From the sequence record LT960552.1: a DNA stretch of 64,000 bases. One strand, given 5' to 3'. Below, piece after piece: positions 3,745-57,810 of this stretch. The notes beneath the pieces were generated by a model. The model was not told the DNA's origin. It saw only the letters and a list, made by a program, of their open reading frames with translations, and searched no databases. The position numbers and the translations under genes were made by a program. The number at the start of each line of letters is the position of its first letter. Positions within the stretch are counted from its first letter, which is position 1.

Positions 3745-4077
3745 ATGAAATTAAATTCCAAAAACATGATTGTAAAAGCATTTGAATTAAAAACATCAGA
3801 AGATGTTGCATTATTCAAAAAGTCATCTTTTGATATTGGTGATATACTTTACAAGTATGAAGATACTGTATTAGTATTTTATGTCGTAGATAATTTTATA
3901 TATTGTTTTGATGAATCAGAGCCAGAAACTGACATACTCAAAAGCAGTACTAACATGGGTGATATTTTGGTATCATACGGTATTGAGTTGGAATATTTCA
4001 AACAAGATTTTGGCGGTAAAGGTTTGTATCTTGCTGATTTTTGTATTAATGAAGATATATTAGTAGATTTACTATAA
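3745..4077 (+). CDS. hypothetical protein
   Basis: ORF in tandem array. Confidence 0.75.
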   Translation: MKLNSKNMIVKAFELKTSEDVALFKKSSFDIGDILYKYEDTVLVFYVVDNFIYCFDESEPETDILKSSTNMGDILVSYGIELEYFKQDFGGKGLYLADFCINEDILVDLL

Positions 4078-23000: not shown

Positions 23001-23480
23001 ATGAATAATCTTATTCAAAAAGATAATGGGCCAATTGACGATGTGATCACGCAAGACGCTTTTGAAGTACATGGGACAATGTTTAATATTAAAGATATAG
23101 TACAATGTTTATTTTTATGCAGTTCAACGATGCATGAATTTTTCAATAACCCAATGTGTAATTGTTTTGCAGTAACTATCAATAGTACTGATAAGTGGGT
23201 TATGGCTACACCGATGACGATGAATACTGAATTTAATGAATGTGTTATGCGTAATAATAAAGAAAAAACACCACAATCTGAAGTACAGAAATTACGTAAT
23301 ACATACTCTAGACCAGATGAAAAACACGTATTGATGTTTTTATCTAAAGGGTATGTGATGGATAATTTTACAGTACAAGAGAGTTATCATGATTTTCTCT
23401 TTACAGAAGGAGAACCACATGTTATGATAACTGCGGAAGATATAGAAAGTTTAACCTTAAAGAATCCTTACTTGGAGTAA
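23001..23480 (+). CDS. hypothetical protein
   Basis: start refined after GGGAG. Confidence 0.75.
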   Translation: MNNLIQKDNGPIDDVITQDAFEVHGTMFNIKDIVQCLFLCSSTMHEFFNNPMCNCFAVTINSTDKWVMATPMTMNTEFNECVMRNNKEKTPQSEVQKLRNTYSRPDEKHVLMFLSKGYVMDNFTVQESYHDFLFTEGEPHVMITAEDIESLTLKNPYLE

Positions 23481-27627: not shown

Positions 27628-27653
27628 AAGACAGCACATCGCTGTCTTTTTTT
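27628..27653 (+). terminator. intrinsic terminator
   Basis: AAGACAGC-acatc-GCTGTCTT + T tract; overlaps the start region of a TGcTATAAT promoter (27615-27623). Confidence 0.7.
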
Positions 27654-51620: not shown

Positions 51621-51787
51621 ATCAAATCTCCTATAAAAGTATGATATTTTTAATTATCATTCCAATTTTGTCTTGACACAGGAATGAACACGTGATACAT
51701 TGTATCTTGTACTGAGTTATTTATTTTAGGGTGTTTCTAAATGCATAATTTATATTCATTAAAAAAATGGAACATCAAAAAAAATTA

Positions 51788-51848
51788 TGTTATAATATAA
51801 GCATCAAAGCGTTGTAGCTTTGAATAATAGACTAAGGGAGTCTTAGAT
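51788..51848 (+). promoter_or_regulatory. TGtTATAAT promoter plus two-hairpin NAD-gene leader, copy 1
   Basis: TCAAAGC-GTTGTA-GCTTTGA ... CTAAG-GGAGT-CTTAG-ATATG. Confidence 0.7.
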
Positions 51849-52922
51849 ATGAAAAATGAAAAAGTATATGTATATATTGGTCGTTTTCAAATGGCACATT
51901 CAGGCCATGAACAAACAATTAAACATGCGTTAGAAAATTCAGACCGTTTGGTAATTCTTGTTGGTTCATCTGACCTTGCACGTGATCCTAAAAATCCGTT
52001 CACGTTCGATGAACGCAATCAGGTACTGGATGCTATGAGTACTCGTTTAGCACAAGAAGAATGGGCTAAAGGGCGTTCGGTTAAGATTAATATCTTACCA
52101 ATCCACGATTACGTTTATAACAACAGCAAATGGTTAATGGAAGTACATGAACAAGTCAAATCAGTAACATCAAGTACTGATATTACTATTACTGGCTGTC
52201 AGAAAGAAGCAGATGAAAGTACTTTCTATTTGAATTTCTTCCCACAGTGGAAACCAGATTTCATTCCAGAGCATAAAATTTCTGAAGGTAATTATACTGT
52301 AAACAGTACTGAAATTCGTAATCAATTCTTCAGTACTAAACAAGTTCCTACAAGTCTTCCAGAAGAAACAAAAGAGTTTCTTGCGAAATTTATGCATACT
52401 AAACCAATGGTATTCGATAATTTAATTGGTGAATTCAATTTCATTAATCGTTATCGTTCAGAAATGATTGAAAAATTACCATTTAAAACTATACCATTTA
52501 TTACTGGCGATGCATTGGTAATTTGTGCTGGTCATGTACTATTGGTTAAACGTAGGACTTTCCCAGGAAAAGGTCTATATGCACTTCCTGGTGGTTTCTT
52601 CGATTCTGAACAAGATGGAACTCAAATTGATTCCGCTATTCGTGAATTAAAAGAAGAAACTAAGATTGATGTCCCATTAAAAGTACTTTATGGTTCTATT
52701 CGGGAAAGTATGGAATTCGGGGATAAACACCGTTCTCTACGTTGGCGTATTATTACCAAATGTGCTTATATCCAATTACAAGACAGTACTTTACCAAAAG
52801 TAAAAGGTGCTGATGATGCGGAAAAAGCATTTTGGATGCCTCTTGGTGAATTAGTTAATAATCGTGATAAATTCTTTGAAGACCATTTAAGTATTATTGA
52901 TACTTTCTTAGGTATTTTATAA
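51849..52922 (+). CDS. bifunctional NMN adenylyltransferase / Nudix ADP-ribose pyrophosphatase (NadM-Nudix, NatV-like)
   Basis: IGRFQ..H.GH, NP F..ER, NSTEIR; Nudix box GG......AIRELKEET. Confidence 0.92.
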   Translation: MKNEKVYVYIGRFQMAHSGHEQTIKHALENSDRLVILVGSSDLARDPKNPFTFDERNQVLDAMSTRLAQEEWAKGRSVKINILPIHDYVYNNSKWLMEVHEQVKSVTSSTDITITGCQKEADESTFYLNFFPQWKPDFIPEHKISEGNYTVNSTEIRNQFFSTKQVPTSLPEETKEFLAKFMHTKPMVFDNLIGEFNFINRYRSEMIEKLPFKTIPFITGDALVICAGHVLLVKRRTFPGKGLYALPGGFFDSEQDGTQIDSAIRELKEETKIDVPLKVLYGSIRESMEFGDKHRSLRWRIITKCAYIQLQDSTLPKVKGADDAEKAFWMPLGELVNNRDKFFEDHLSIIDTFLGIL

Positions 52923-52970
52923 TAATATTGGAGTACACTATATAGTACTCCATTTTAAGCGAGTGAACAT

Positions 52971-53489
52971 ATGTTATATTGCCAACCAAATAGTTTTTAT
53001 GATGAAATGCTATATATTTCTAAAGCTAATGATAAATTTTTAAAGAAGTTATCATTGCCACAATATAATATTTCAAATTCTATATTAATGATAGAACCAA
53101 TAAGTTATATTATTAAAATAGTACTCAATGAACCTAATTTTAGTGGTACTGGAAATATAATTGCATTACGAACTTTCGGAGTTAATAACTCATTAACAAT
53201 GACTGCCGATTGCACTTATATGAGTGTATATTACGCAATAGTTGTTAATGGAACATTATTGATTTCCAAAGGATCTATATCAGATGTTTATATGAATAAT
53301 GATGGTGATACAATATATACCACATCAGATGGATATGGTGATGAATATCATTATAGTATTCAAGATATAGCTAATGCTGGAAATGATTTATATGCGTTGT
53401 ATGCATATGTATATTATAATGATAATATATTTCGACCAGATAATTTATTAGCAAAAATTCCAGTAATTTTATTAAAGAATTTGGTATAA
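52971..53489 (+). CDS. hypothetical protein
   Basis: ORF between the NAD genes. Confidence 0.7.
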   Translation: MLYCQPNSFYDEMLYISKANDKFLKKLSLPQYNISNSILMIEPISYIIKIVLNEPNFSGTGNIIALRTFGVNNSLTMTADCTYMSVYYAIVVNGTLLISKGSISDVYMNNDGDTIYTTSDGYGDEYHYSIQDIANAGNDLYALYAYVYYNDNIFRPDNLLAKIPVILLKNLV

Positions 53490-53501
53490 GCCAAAATAAC
53501 C

Positions 53502-53544
53502 GAAAGCGTGTAGCTTTCACACCTATACTAAGGGAGTCTTAGAT
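53502..53544 (+). promoter_or_regulatory. two-hairpin NAD-gene leader, copy 2
   Basis: GAAAGC-GTGTA-GCTTTC ... CTAAG-GGAGT-CTTAG-ATATG. Confidence 0.7.
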
Positions 53545-55023
53545 ATGAAAAATTTAAAAGTAAACTTTATTCTTAATGTTGATTCATACAAAACTGGTCA
53601 CGGTTTTATGATGAAAGATGGCGTTGTAGCACTCGAATCAAACATAATTGCCCGTAAACCATCCAAATTTGCTACTCATGTAGTGATGATGGGTATTCAG
53701 TACTATCTACAAGAGTATTTGGATATTAATATTACTGTAGATGATATCAACGAAGCAGAACATGAAACTAGTCAACGTGGTGATGACTTTGACCGCGAAT
53801 TTTGGGAACATATTGTAGAAGTACATGGTGGTAAAATTCCATTACATATTCGTGCTATTCCTGAAGGTACGTTGGTTCCTGTTGGTTGTCCTTTGGTACG
53901 TACATTTAGTACTGATGAACGTGTGGCAGTAATTGAAAGTTACATTGAAACTCAGTTACAACGTGCAATTTGGTTCCCAACAACTGTGGCAAGTAATGCT
54001 CGTAGCATTAAAGAATTTTTAGCAGATACAATGGAACGTCATGCAGGTCATCGTTTTGTAGATTATCATCTTCATAACTTTGGTGATCGTGGTGCATCAA
54101 GTTACGAATCAGCCATGATTGCTGGTATGGCACATGCAACTGTTTTTAATGGTTCTGACTGTTTATCTGCTAATCGGTTCATTAAATATTACTATAATAC
54201 TGACAAAGCATATTTGACCAGTGTCACTGCTAGTGAACATAGTGCAACTTGTTCAAACTCAGACGCAGACAAACGCGACGACTTTAATATGGCGTTGAAG
54301 ATGGTTCGTTTGTGGGAGAAAAAAGTTGATCGGTTCATTGCAAATGGTTCTGTTGGTGTTCCACCAATTGTATCAATAGTTATTGATACTTATGATGCAT
54401 ATCGTTTTGTTCGTGAATTTATTGGTACACGTTTAAAAGATATGATTATTGAAATTGCAAAACGTTGCCCTGGTGCTAAACTTGTTATGCGTCCAGATAG
54501 TGGTGATCCAACAACCATGCCAATTGAAATCATTGAACTTCTGATGGAAAAATTTGGCAGTACTGTAAATGGTTATGGGTACAAAGTACTTCCACCATTT
54601 ATTGGTGTAATTCAAGGTGATGGTATTAATGAAACTAGTATTCGTCAAATTGTTTCTAATCTTGATGATAAAAAACTTTGCATTGAAAATATAGTTTTTG
54701 GTATGGGTGGTAAATTAGTTCATCCTGCTGATGGTCGCGATACTTTTTCTTTTGCAATGAAAGGATCTGCACAAAAACTTGAAGATGCTACTTGGGAAGA
54801 TTTATTCAAAGATCCAATTACTGATGTAGGTAAACGTTCTTTGCGTGGTCGTGTAACAACTTATGAATGCACTAATACTCATAAAATTATTGCAGAACGT
54901 ATAGAATTACAAGAAATCAATCCATTCTTACGAGATATGATGGTTGATATGTATATTGATGGTGTTATCATGAATCTCTGTTCTTTTGATGAAGTTCGTG
55001 AACGTGCCAACAAAGGGTTATAA
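53545..55023 (+). CDS. nadV: nicotinamide phosphoribosyltransferase
   Basis: DSYK..H, LH.FG.RG, SEHS, DTYD, RPDSGD, QGDG, FGMGG. Confidence 0.93.
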   Translation: MKNLKVNFILNVDSYKTGHGFMMKDGVVALESNIIARKPSKFATHVVMMGIQYYLQEYLDINITVDDINEAEHETSQRGDDFDREFWEHIVEVHGGKIPLHIRAIPEGTLVPVGCPLVRTFSTDERVAVIESYIETQLQRAIWFPTTVASNARSIKEFLADTMERHAGHRFVDYHLHNFGDRGASSYESAMIAGMAHATVFNGSDCLSANRFIKYYYNTDKAYLTSVTASEHSATCSNSDADKRDDFNMALKMVRLWEKKVDRFIANGSVGVPPIVSIVIDTYDAYRFVREFIGTRLKDMIIEIAKRCPGAKLVMRPDSGDPTTMPIEIIELLMEKFGSTVNGYGYKVLPPFIGVIQGDGINETSIRQIVSNLDDKKLCIENIVFGMGGKLVHPADGRDTFSFAMKGSAQKLEDATWEDLFKDPITDVGKRSLRGRVTTYECTNTHKIIAERIELQEINPFLRDMMVDMYIDGVIMNLCSFDEVRERANKGL

Positions 55024-55065
55024 TATTTTAGGGGGCGTTTTGCCCCCTTATTTTTAAGGTTTAAT

Positions 55066-57018: not shown

Positions 57019-57810
57019 ATGAATCTCAATAACTTTATTGCAAATAAAGGTGTTCCACGGTTAGTATTTGCTACAGGTGCAGGATTATCACAAGAATCTG
57101 GAATTAGTACTTTTCGTGATGCTGATAATGAAGGTTTATGGGATCAGTACAATATTGATGAAATTTGTAATTTTGCAACTTTTCATATTAATTATCAAAA
57201 AGTACATAATTTTTACAACCAACTACGAGAAAACTTAAAACATGTTGAACCAAATATTGGTCATCATATTATTGCTGAATTTCAAAAAATGTACGGGGAT
57301 GATAGGGTAATACATATCACGGCTAATGTTGATGATTTATCAGAACGTGCAGGTGGAACAGCAATGCATGTTCATGGTAAACTAACTGAAGTAGTAGAAC
57401 CTTTTAGTATTAATTCTAACAATTATGAAGTAAAAGATATTGGATATGAAAGTTTCACACCAACTGATGGGGTAATTTCTAAACCAAATATTGTTATGTT
57501 TGGTGAAGGATTTTGGTTCACTGATGGTGTACGTAAACCAATTTACGATGATATGTATCTAGTACTAGATAGTTTAACTGAACAAGATACTGTAATTGTT
57601 ATTGGTTCATCTGATACAGTAATTCCTTGGTCAGTATATGCTGGGTTAGCAACTCCAGCCCAAACATTAAATGTGAATCCAGAATCACACGAAAAAGATG
57701 AATATTTTACATATAATATGTATCAACCAATCAGCAATGCAATATCTATGATTGACCAATATATTCACATGCGTATGGATAAACAAGATTTTAGCTCAGT
57801 AGAATATTAA
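57019..57810 (+). CDS. Sir2/CobB-like NAD-dependent deacylase
   Basis: TGAGLSQESGISTFRD, T.NVDDL.ERAG, HVHG, KPNIVMFGE, IGSS. Confidence 0.9.
   Translation: MNLNNFIANKGVPRLVFATGAGLSQESGISTFRDADNEGLWDQYNIDEICNFATFHINYQKVHNFYNQLRENLKHVEPNIGHHIIAEFQKMYGDDRVIHITANVDDLSERAGGTAMHVHGKLTEVVEPFSINSNNYEVKDIGYESFTPTDGVISKPNIVMFGEGFWFTDGVRKPIYDDMYLVLDSLTEQDTVIVIGSSDTVIPWSVYAGLATPAQTLNVNPESHEKDEYFTYNMYQPISNAISMIDQYIHMRMDKQDFSSVEY

Follow-up and report, generated by a model that had tools for sequence, protein, structure and literature searches.

A two-hairpin RNA leader at the start codons of the NAD salvage genes natV and nadV in phages and Proteobacteria

Introduction

Why do two genes of nicotinamide adenine dinucleotide (NAD) salvage, natV and nadV, carry the same short sequence directly before their start codons in one phage genome, and what could read it? 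We address this question in a stretch of 64,000 nucleotides (nt) from sequence record LT960552.1 (hereafter the window), whose source is Yersinia phage fHe-Yen9-03, a jumbo phage of 352.6 kb that belongs to Eneladusvirus; over 3.5 kb around the leaders the sequence is 100% identical to that phage at equal coordinates. The natV gene (g100; 51849..52922, + strand) encodes a bifunctional nicotinamide mononucleotide (NMN) adenylyltransferase / Nudix ADP-ribose pyrophosphatase (NadM-Nudix), as follows from the Pfam domains CTP_transf_like and NUDIX and from the annotation of LT960552.1. The nadV gene (g102; 53545..55023, + strand) encodes a nicotinamide phosphoribosyltransferase, identified by the Pfam domains NAMPT_N and NAPRTase and by the same annotation. 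Together they make up the phage pathway named NARP2 by Osterman et al.; it serves about 1% of sequenced phages in the rebuilding of NAD+ after bacterial immunity has depleted it (bioRxiv 10.1101/2024.02.11.579819).

An earlier interpretation of the window, made from its letters (below, the sequence-only reading), had proposed a pathway-specific structured leader at the ribosome-binding site (RBS) of both NAD salvage genes, and this leader proves to be conserved in phages and bacteria. The two copies in the window are members of a widespread uncatalogued family of cis-acting RNA leaders, composed of an upstream hairpin with a characteristic loop (hairpin 1) and a downstream hairpin (hairpin 2) that carries the Shine-Dalgarno (SD) sequence in its loop and ends at the start codon. 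From this arrangement we infer control at the level of translation, and tentatively favour a protein as the factor that reads the leader.

Two leader copies in Yersinia phage fHe-Yen9-03

The window contains exactly two occurrences of the 21-mer ACTAAGGGAGTCTTAGATATG, one before natV (51831-51851) and one before nadV (53527-53547), and no extra matches at up to three mismatches; two copies were found in none of 100 shuffled sequences. The sequence-only reading had noticed this repeat; the identity between the two leaders in fact spans 27 nt, through ATGAAAAAT. Each copy contains the hairpin 2 sequence CTAAG-GGAGT-CTTAG, where the SD sequence GGAG occupies the pentaloop and the helix ends 2 nt upstream of the ATG. 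Hairpin 2 of copy 1 lies at 51832..51846 (+), before ATG 51849, and is assigned by sequence and folding (-3.3 kcal/mol); that of copy 2, at 53528..53542 (+) before ATG 53545, is assigned by sequence, folding and the clade covariance model. Hairpin 1 precedes it by a linker of 8-9 nt. This upstream hairpin is TCAAAGC-GTTGTA-GCTTTGA in copy 1 (51804..51823, +; -6.4 kcal/mol, z-score -4.45 on folding) and GAAAGC-GTGTA-GCTTTC in copy 2 (53502..53518, +), the latter starting 13 nt past the stop codon of the intervening gene g101. Both assignments rest on sequence, folding and the clade alignment described below, and both hairpins are as first described.

The first base of the copy 1 hairpin 1 is about 8 nt downstream of the -10 element, an extended -10 sequence TGtTATAAT at 51788-51796, which the sequence-only reading had placed directly before copy 1. 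Since copy 1 lies directly 3' of this extended -10, its hairpin 1 is predicted to lie at the 5' end of the natV mRNA or close to it. A terminator scan of the window listed neither hairpin 1 as a + strand intrinsic terminator. Copy 1 can also form an alternative AGACU/AGUCU stem (-3.6 kcal/mol) that is isoenergetic with hairpin 2 (-3.3 kcal/mol), as the sequence-only reading had pointed out. This stem is not conserved across the family, being reduced to 3-4 base pairs (bp) in the relatives and in copy 2 and finding no support elsewhere, and we do not retain it as a family feature.

A scan of the whole window with the clade covariance model R2, with filters off, scored the two copies at 63.7 and 60.1 bits and the next match at 19.5 bits. 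The claim that the motif precedes no other gene of the window is thereby upheld: the model scores only the two copies, and the intervening gene g101 has a plain RBS. The 19.5-bit match is a lone hairpin 1-like structure, GACAGC-GATGT-GCTGTC (27633-27650, - strand), with no hairpin 2 or start codon after it; its stem is that of the natV hairpin 1 in the IMG/VR locus L048, where the loop is GATGTA, not GATGT. The 15-mer of hairpin 2 has only two occurrences in a complete 354-kb sister genome, and BLASTN finds two places in the record of fHe-Yen9-03 itself. Hairpin 1 was also considered as a genome-wide hairpin type and rejected as such, with 10 hairpins of at least 5 bp and GNNGTA/GNGTA loops in the window against 8.2 expected. 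Three gene starts in the window, at 23001, 32855 and 42861 (+), have the SD sequence in loops of other types (AGGGAG, AGGAG and AAGGAG) on stems of 5-6 bp, with no hairpin 1.

Leaders of Rak2-like phages

Both genes are preceded by the element in Serratia phage BF, Erwinia phage pEa_SNUABM_12, Pectobacterium phage CBB, Cronobacter phage GAP32 and Xanthomonas phage XbC2. Hairpin 2 of these five relatives is identical letter-for-letter to that of the window, and their hairpin 1 stems show compensating changes (AAAGC/GCTTT, AAGGT/GCCTT with a U-G pair, and AAGGC/GCCTT). For the Rak2-like clade as a whole, 21 leaders were aligned with MAFFT, without reference to a structure. In this alignment 91.6% of the cells are paired, versus 78.6% in shuffles, none of 500 of which was as high, and double-sided changes are present in five of the six core pairs of hairpin 1. 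The closing-pair covariation, first seen as C-G versus G-C between the two window copies, is borne out by the clade alignment (GC in 9, CG in 7 and GU in 3); the next outer pair of hairpin 1, beyond this closing pair, is unsupported there. The hairpin 2 stem is invariant within the clade and covaries across the wider family. The consensus of the hairpin 1 loop in the Rak2-like group is G-N-(N)-G-U-A.

Some more distant phages depart from this form of hairpin 2. The arms are swapped before natV of phage RaK2 (CTTAG-GGAGTA-CTAAG), which amounts to a compensatory A-U to U-A change, and natV of phage 7t3 has CTAAG-GAGTA-CTTAG. The nadV genes of phages 7t3 and Hallingskeid have kept a GNNGUA hairpin 1, with a plain SD sequence instead of hairpin 2.

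Distant phages and viral contigs

The exact 15-mer of hairpin 2 is also found before nadV of Klebsiella phage RaK2 (NadV 54% identical) and Vibrio phage 2.275.O, before both natV and nadV of Xanthomonas phage XaC1 and of the T4-like Ochrobactrum phage OC, and before natV of a 172-kb IMG/VR contig (NatV 35% identical). This 15-mer, CTAAGGGAGTCTTAG (loci L022, L035, L036, L037 and L038), is common to lineages with NatV or NadV proteins only 33-55% identical, and other lineages have unrelated stems. Horizontal transfer of the leader, or else a contact that depends on this exact sequence, could account for its presence across lineages.

A broader viral set consisted of 80 IMG/VR loci retrieved with a NadV profile, in which the sequence 5' of nadV and natV was inspected. 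The majority of these loci have the same two-hairpin architecture built from quite different stems. Variants of hairpin 2 include AATAGA-GGAGT-TCTATT, GATAAA-GGAGT-TTTATC, TTCGA-GGAGT-TCGAA and GTAAA-GGAGA-TTTAC, and the pentaloop of hairpin 1 is either ATAGA with a closing G-C pair or AGAGA/AGTGA with a closing C-G pair. Among T4-like phages, hairpin 2 is GAAG-GGAGC-CTTC in Aeh1 and AACGT-GGAGT-ACGTT in KpF2; it is also present in phiN3 and is reduced in the KVP40-like phage VH7D.

A covariance model (R1) was constructed from 13 seeds of the AUAGA class. In the viral loci (573 kb, E<=1) it gave 67 matches, all on the gene strand, of which 41 belong to nadV, 22 to natV and four to small hypothetical open reading frames (ORFs). 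The search of other phages with a covariance model that the sequence-only reading had proposed thus found the element widely before natV and nadV. The small ORFs with a leader stand beside nadV (L081, leaders at 1991-2046 and 2643-2698; L111, 1383-1437; L113, 2543-2594), encode proteins of 117, 81, 152 and 114 amino acids with no Pfam domain, and may be either extra regulon members or candidate partners.

The window copies are barely detected by R1 (12.8 and 12.5 bits). We nevertheless join the window class to the AUAGA class because they share the same genes and position and the same hairpin 2 loop, because of bridging cases such as L022, which combines an AUAGA hairpin 1 with the exact window 15-mer and scores 41.8 bits, and because 7t3 and Hallingskeid have a GNNGUA hairpin 1 together with an altered or missing hairpin 2. 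A U-run follows hairpin 1 in a few phages, Vibrio phage 2.275.O and KpF2 among them, and makes it resemble a terminator (loci L115 at ~2951-2985, L035 at ~3950-3990, L204 at ~2900-2945); transcriptional attenuation is a possibility in these members.

Bacterial chromosomes

The leader is not restricted to viruses. The NadV profile was also used to retrieve 80 loci from bacterial genomes (475 kb). There R1 gave 70 matches, 69 of them on the gene strand, and 55 of the 57 matches that were checked stand directly before nadV or natV, usually both in one natV-nadV operon, each cistron having its own leader copy. Chromosomal natV-nadV operons with the leader occur in Alpha-, Gamma- and Epsilonproteobacteria. 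Among the hosts are Moraxella osloensis (complete chromosomes), Faucicola, Enhydrobacter, Kordiimonas, Aestuariispira, Thiothrix, Sulfurovum and other Campylobacterales, and many metagenome-assembled genomes of Pseudomonadales and Oceanospirillales; in Hahella and Microbulbifer the leader was recognised by eye.

Occurrence of the leader follows the gene pair. The natV gene adjoins nadV in 45 of 46 R1-positive bacterial loci versus 9 of 34 R1-negative ones, and in most of these nine the motif is visible by eye. No leader was found at nadV genes without natV (Neisseriaceae, Vibrio, Shinella and others).

Many of the motif-positive operons have the transcriptional regulator NrtR (domains NUDIX and NrtR_WHD) divergently encoded beside them, which argues against the RNA leader being a replacement for NrtR and indicates that it adds to NrtR as a separate layer of control. 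Examples of NrtR genes beside natV-nadV operons are L147 328-1074 (-), L183 333-1067 (-), L130 392-1111 (-) and L168 600-1262 (+). AT-rich palindromes that resemble NrtR operators (for example, TAGTGTTATTATAACACTA) lie upstream of the NrtR-like genes in L168 and L200.

Structure, loops and gene specificity of the family

The pairing is well supported across the family. In the R1 alignment, which was fitted to the model, 96.3% of the cells are paired versus 56.2% in shuffles (0/500 as high), and double-sided changes occur in 13 of 13 pairs. The covariation score is 0.866 versus 0.205, falling to 0.05-0.12 when the partner is slid by 1-3 columns. The unfitted MAFFT alignment of the Rak2-like clade and the raw upstream rows agree with this covariation. 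The pair cells comprise 1238 Watson-Crick, 81 G-U/U-G and 21 A-C/C-A combinations; the excess of G-U/U-G over A-C/C-A points to an RNA of the sense strand rather than a DNA palindrome.

Hairpin 1 has 6-8 bp and a median stability of -6.1 kcal/mol, and hairpin 2 has 4-6 bp and a median of -3.0 kcal/mol (interquartile range -3.8 to -2.1). They are separated by an unconserved, G-poor linker of 5-20 nt (median 10.5 nt). As modelled, the helix of hairpin 2 abuts the start codon, its 3' arm serves as the spacer between SD and AUG, and the SD sequence is the pentaloop GGAG(U). In a joint alignment of 117 matches the hairpin 1 loop reads A (99%), U/G (78/16%), A (93%), G (100%) and A (100%), closed by G-C in about 80%, and the hairpin 2 loop reads G, G and A (100% each), G/U (72/25%) and U/C/A (78/13/7%), closed by A-U in 94%.

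Three classes of the conserved, purine-rich hairpin 1 loop can be distinguished, AUAGA being the form of most bacteria and phages, AGAGA/AGUGA that of one phage group, and GNNGUA that of the Rak2-like phages. The loop has been replaced in the Rak2-like phages, in OC and at natV of XaC1; over several phage lineages the replacements are GNNGUA, GGGGU, AGWGA and UUU. Within a genome the switch matches in both copies: GNNGUA in Rak2-like phages, GGGGU in OC, and AGWGA with a flipped closing pair in the other group. Within a lineage the hairpin 1 loop also tends to resemble the hairpin 2 loop (GNNGUA with GGAGU(A/C); GGGGU with GGAGU).

Column frequencies and rows inspected by eye revealed no conserved internal loop, junction or pseudoknot, and inspection of the rows by eye revealed no Watson-Crick complementarity between the two loops. 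A loop-loop or pseudoknot interaction was considered in the form of AUAGA(C) pairing with the 3' arm of hairpin 2; certain members allow it (AAUAGA:UCUAUU, AGAC:GUCU), whereas L057, L089, L113 and the Rak2-like clade do not, and it was rejected as a general feature. Pairing of hairpin 1 with 16S rRNA was rejected as well, there being no complement of any loop variant in E. coli rrsH.

Over all matches, 136 of 137 are on the gene strand, and 118 of the 124 whose downstream gene was typed end at a nadV or natV start codon. A loose test for an SD sequence in a hairpin loop near the start is passed by 70% of nadV and 74% of natV starts. Among the 1144 other ORFs of these loci the rate is ~5%, and several nadV genes under a different start call contribute to it. 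The leader does not extend to all genes of the Nampt family: the NARP1 genes adps and namat (SaGU1, wV8, ICP1) and natV and nadV of Caulobacter phage Magneto have a plain RBS.

Possible readers of the leader

For repression by a hairpin at the RBS, the rule of thumb of de Smit and van Duin demands several kcal/mol more than hairpin 2 has to offer. At about -3 kcal/mol, hairpin 2 alone would be too weak to block the 30S subunit, which would place the AUG only after melting it. The conserved marginal stability of hairpin 2, together with a conserved specificity hairpin some 10 nt upstream, suggests a reader that docks on hairpin 1 and clamps hairpin 2. A trans-acting factor of this kind would recognise the loop of hairpin 1 and shut off the translation of each cistron separately.

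We favour a protein over a small ligand as this factor, most likely one encoded in the same genome and possibly NatV acting autogenously, and put the probability of such a protein operator at about 0.45. The protein is ranked first because in several lineages the hairpin 1 loop has been replaced in both copies of a genome, because this loop resembles the hairpin 2 loop within a lineage, because the leader has no internal loop, junction or pseudoknot, and because there is a separate site at each cistron, in the manner of T4 RegA or ThrRS control. The variable length and sequence of the linker were also counted toward a genome-encoded partner. Since the motif goes with the natV-nadV pair, NatV (NadM-Nudix) would be the natural candidate, by way of a guess: it may repress its own translation as well as that of nadV, perhaps in response to NAD+, NMN or ADP-ribose. 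Control of this kind would limit a pathway that drains phosphoribosyl pyrophosphate (PRPP) and over-produces NAD+. A rationale for tight control is provided by the natV-nadV operon of phage KVP40, for which toxicity in E. coli, excess production of NAD+ and consumption of PRPP are reported (bioRxiv 10.1101/2024.02.11.579819).

Several points weigh against a protein operator or soften its evidence. The near-invariant AUAGA loop in three proteobacterial classes fits an unchanging ligand equally well. The concerted loop changes in phages could have arisen by gene conversion between the two leaders of a genome, which is suggested by the within-genome similarity of stems in RaK2, the window and L075. 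The covariation figures of the R1 alignment lean toward the model to which it was fitted, and loop conservation is in part a matter of ascertainment, as model matches resemble the seeds by construction. Finally, we know of no RNA binding by NadM-Nudix or Nampt proteins.

The strongest rival is a small riboswitch, which we regard as unlikely. Here the two pentaloops, perhaps docking in the manner of guanidine-II, would bind NAD+, NMN, nicotinamide, ADP-ribose or PRPP, and hairpin 2 would be stabilised or opened as a result. Such a sensor is consistent with the confinement of the leader, in phages and in three classes of Proteobacteria alike, to two genes from a single pathway, with the near-invariant hairpin 1 loop in bacteria, with the SD sequence lying inside the structure, and with coexistence of the leader with a transcription factor, NrtR, as a separate layer; its layout of two hairpins with a variable linker is also like that of the guanidine-II class. 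However, wholesale replacement of the hairpin 1 loop in several phage lineages with the genes intact disfavours a fixed ligand pocket. Only about 10 unpaired nucleotides are conserved, of which 3-4 are the SD sequence itself, the loops are not complementary, and pairing of the hairpin 1 loop with the hairpin 2 arm is inconsistent by eye. Neither NAD+-I, NAD+-II nor any other Rfam model matches the leader, and each cistron has a copy of its own. In its boldest form, less likely still, two docking pentaloops would constitute a very small riboswitch class common to bacteria and viruses and sensing NAD+ or nicotinamide, ADP-ribose or NMN, so that NARP2 would be switched on only after destruction of NAD+ by defences of the Thoeris, DSR or SIR2 type. 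If true, phage counter-defence would here include a metabolite-sensing RNA for the first time.

Alternatively, the leader may need no reader at all. In a constitutive, self-contained expression cassette, hairpin 1 would protect the 5' end or insulate the gene, and hairpin 2 would present the SD sequence in any context. The natV and nadV genes are indeed mobile auxiliary genes in many unrelated phage backbones, hairpin 1 stands where the natV mRNA is predicted to begin or just past an upstream stop codon, a U-run follows it in a few relatives (Vibrio phage 2.275.O, L115, KpF2), and hairpin 2 is too weak for repression alone. We nonetheless consider such a cassette doubtful and place it below the riboswitch. 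Loop conservation would be superfluous in a pure stability or insulator hairpin, but four of the five AUAGA positions are conserved at 93-100%. The last base of the hairpin 2 loop (U, C or A, almost never G) and its A-U closing pair (94%) are conserved beyond the needs of an SD sequence. Moreover, other mobile genes of the same loci lack the element, as do the NARP1 genes, and the rest of the window shows no enrichment of hairpins with hairpin 1-type loops.

A further rival is binding of the global host regulator CsrA/RsmA, which recognises GGA in hairpin loops. Its targets have two or more A(N)GGA sites, mostly in loops, with one of them overlapping the SD sequence, and the GGA of hairpin 2, preceded by A of the closing pair in 94%, resembles it. 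The element is confined to two genes, however; hairpin 1 has GGA only where its stem happens to end in GG, the hosts include groups where CsrA is not universal, and conservation of AUAGA would be left unexplained, all of which makes this reading very improbable. Chance or a recent local duplication of the RBS, to which the 27 identical nt of the window copies might point, can be dismissed with near certainty, given the absence of two copies from all 100 shuffles and the presence of the element before both genes, with different compensating stems, in phages of 33-55% protein identity and in bacterial chromosomes; this disposes of the concern in the sequence-only reading that the leader might reflect duplication of an RBS.

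Whatever its reader, a leader at both NARP2 start codons, common to chromosomal nadM-nadV operons, offers a testable handle on regulation of the pathway and adds an RNA layer to NAD salvage control, so far ascribed to NrtR. With more than 130 instances in the ~1 Mb sampled, it is a candidate entry for RNA-family catalogues. A metabolite as the reader would mean a new riboswitch class; NatV or NadV in this role would mean a new enzyme moonlighting as a translational repressor.

The natV-g101-nadV locus

The candidate promoter of natV is sigma-70-like, with the -35 element TGGAAC, a 17-nt spacer and TGtTATAAT as extended -10 (51768..51796, +; assigned by sequence). At the same position the relatives have TTGAAAC-N17-TATAAT. 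The promoter was not listed by the promoter consensus scanner of the window, which missed it because the -35 element is weak in fHe-Yen9-03. Downstream of natV, a hairpin GGAGTAC...GTACTCC followed by ATTTT (52929..52952, +) is recognised by sequence and kept in the relatives, where its loop is TTCG or GAAA. The terminator scan lists this hairpin on the - strand, and its + strand tail has only four T; it may be a weak or leaky terminator or a processing site within the natV-g101-nadV unit. The unit ends with an intrinsic terminator (55030..55048, +), which has an 8-bp stem with six GC pairs followed by a T-run.

Between natV and nadV lies g101 (52971..53489, +), a conserved hypothetical ORF of 172 amino acids (phrog_25832, function unknown) that has a plain RBS, carries no leader and yielded no Pfam family. 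It is kept in this place in Eneladus/Mimas-like phages, XaC1, 7t3 and Hallingskeid. The g101 product was considered as a clade-specific partner of the leader and rejected, since RaK2 has GNNGUA loops yet its g101 slot is taken by an unrelated HNH homing endonuclease. As in the relatives, a gene of a SIR2-family NAD-dependent deacetylase (g109; 57019-57810, +) is located 2 kb 3' of nadV; it has no leader.

Comparison with known RNA elements

The leader found no match in Rfam 15 scans of the window region (E<=10) or of nine viral and ten bacterial loci (E<=1), and full-text literature searches found no description of it, a report in a subscription journal remaining possible. The leader is thus a family that matches no Rfam family and is probably undescribed, within a known kind of element, structured translational leaders.

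Two DNA- or RNA-binding regulators invite comparison by their targets or sites. NrtR controls nadV-nadM operons and thus the same target genes. Its site, however, is a palindrome in promoter DNA, whereas the leader has variable stems that compensate, is strand-specific and G-U tolerant, and also occurs between cistrons; no NrtR was found near the leader in the phage loci. TwoAYGGAY and CsrA-type sites likewise have GGA in a hairpin loop, but the same loop is found in both of their hairpins and they are not tied to natV or nadV; none of these families was matched by the leader in Rfam.

Among riboswitches, NAD+-I (nadA motif) and NAD+-II (pnuC motif) are also cis-regulatory RNAs of NAD-pathway genes, and NAD+-II involves the SD sequence. 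They differ from the leader in their genes (nadA and pnuC), in their taxa (Acidobacteria and Streptococcus) and in having tandem bulged-stem domains (NAD+-I) and a pseudoknot that takes in the SD sequence (NAD+-II), and the leader matches neither Rfam model. Closer in form is guanidine-II (mini-ykkC), which has two short tandem hairpins with conserved loops and closing pairs, a variable unconserved linker, a position at the RBS and a translational mode of action. In contrast to the leader, both guanidine-II loops are ACGR tetraloops closed by C-G and pair with each other, whereas the leader loops differ (AUAGA or GNNGUA in hairpin 1, GGAGU in hairpin 2) and are non-complementary. In addition, the leader has the SD sequence in a loop, not after the hairpin, serves NAD salvage rather than guanidine export, and gave no Rfam match.

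The autogenous operators of E. coli thrS (ThrRS), of T4 RegA, gp32 and gp43, the iron-responsive element (IRE) bound by aconitase, and the PyrR binding loop provide another comparison. The leader has no sequence or model match to any of them and, unlike them, is common to bacteria and many unrelated phages. In one phage subgroup CC-AGAGA-GG presumably resembles the PyrR loop and C-AGUGA-G the IRE loop, which we take as a lead only. Like the leader, these operators are hairpins with conserved loops at or near the SD sequence; their reader is a protein that belongs to the same pathway or is encoded in the same genome, and in the case of ThrRS a dimer reads two hairpins.

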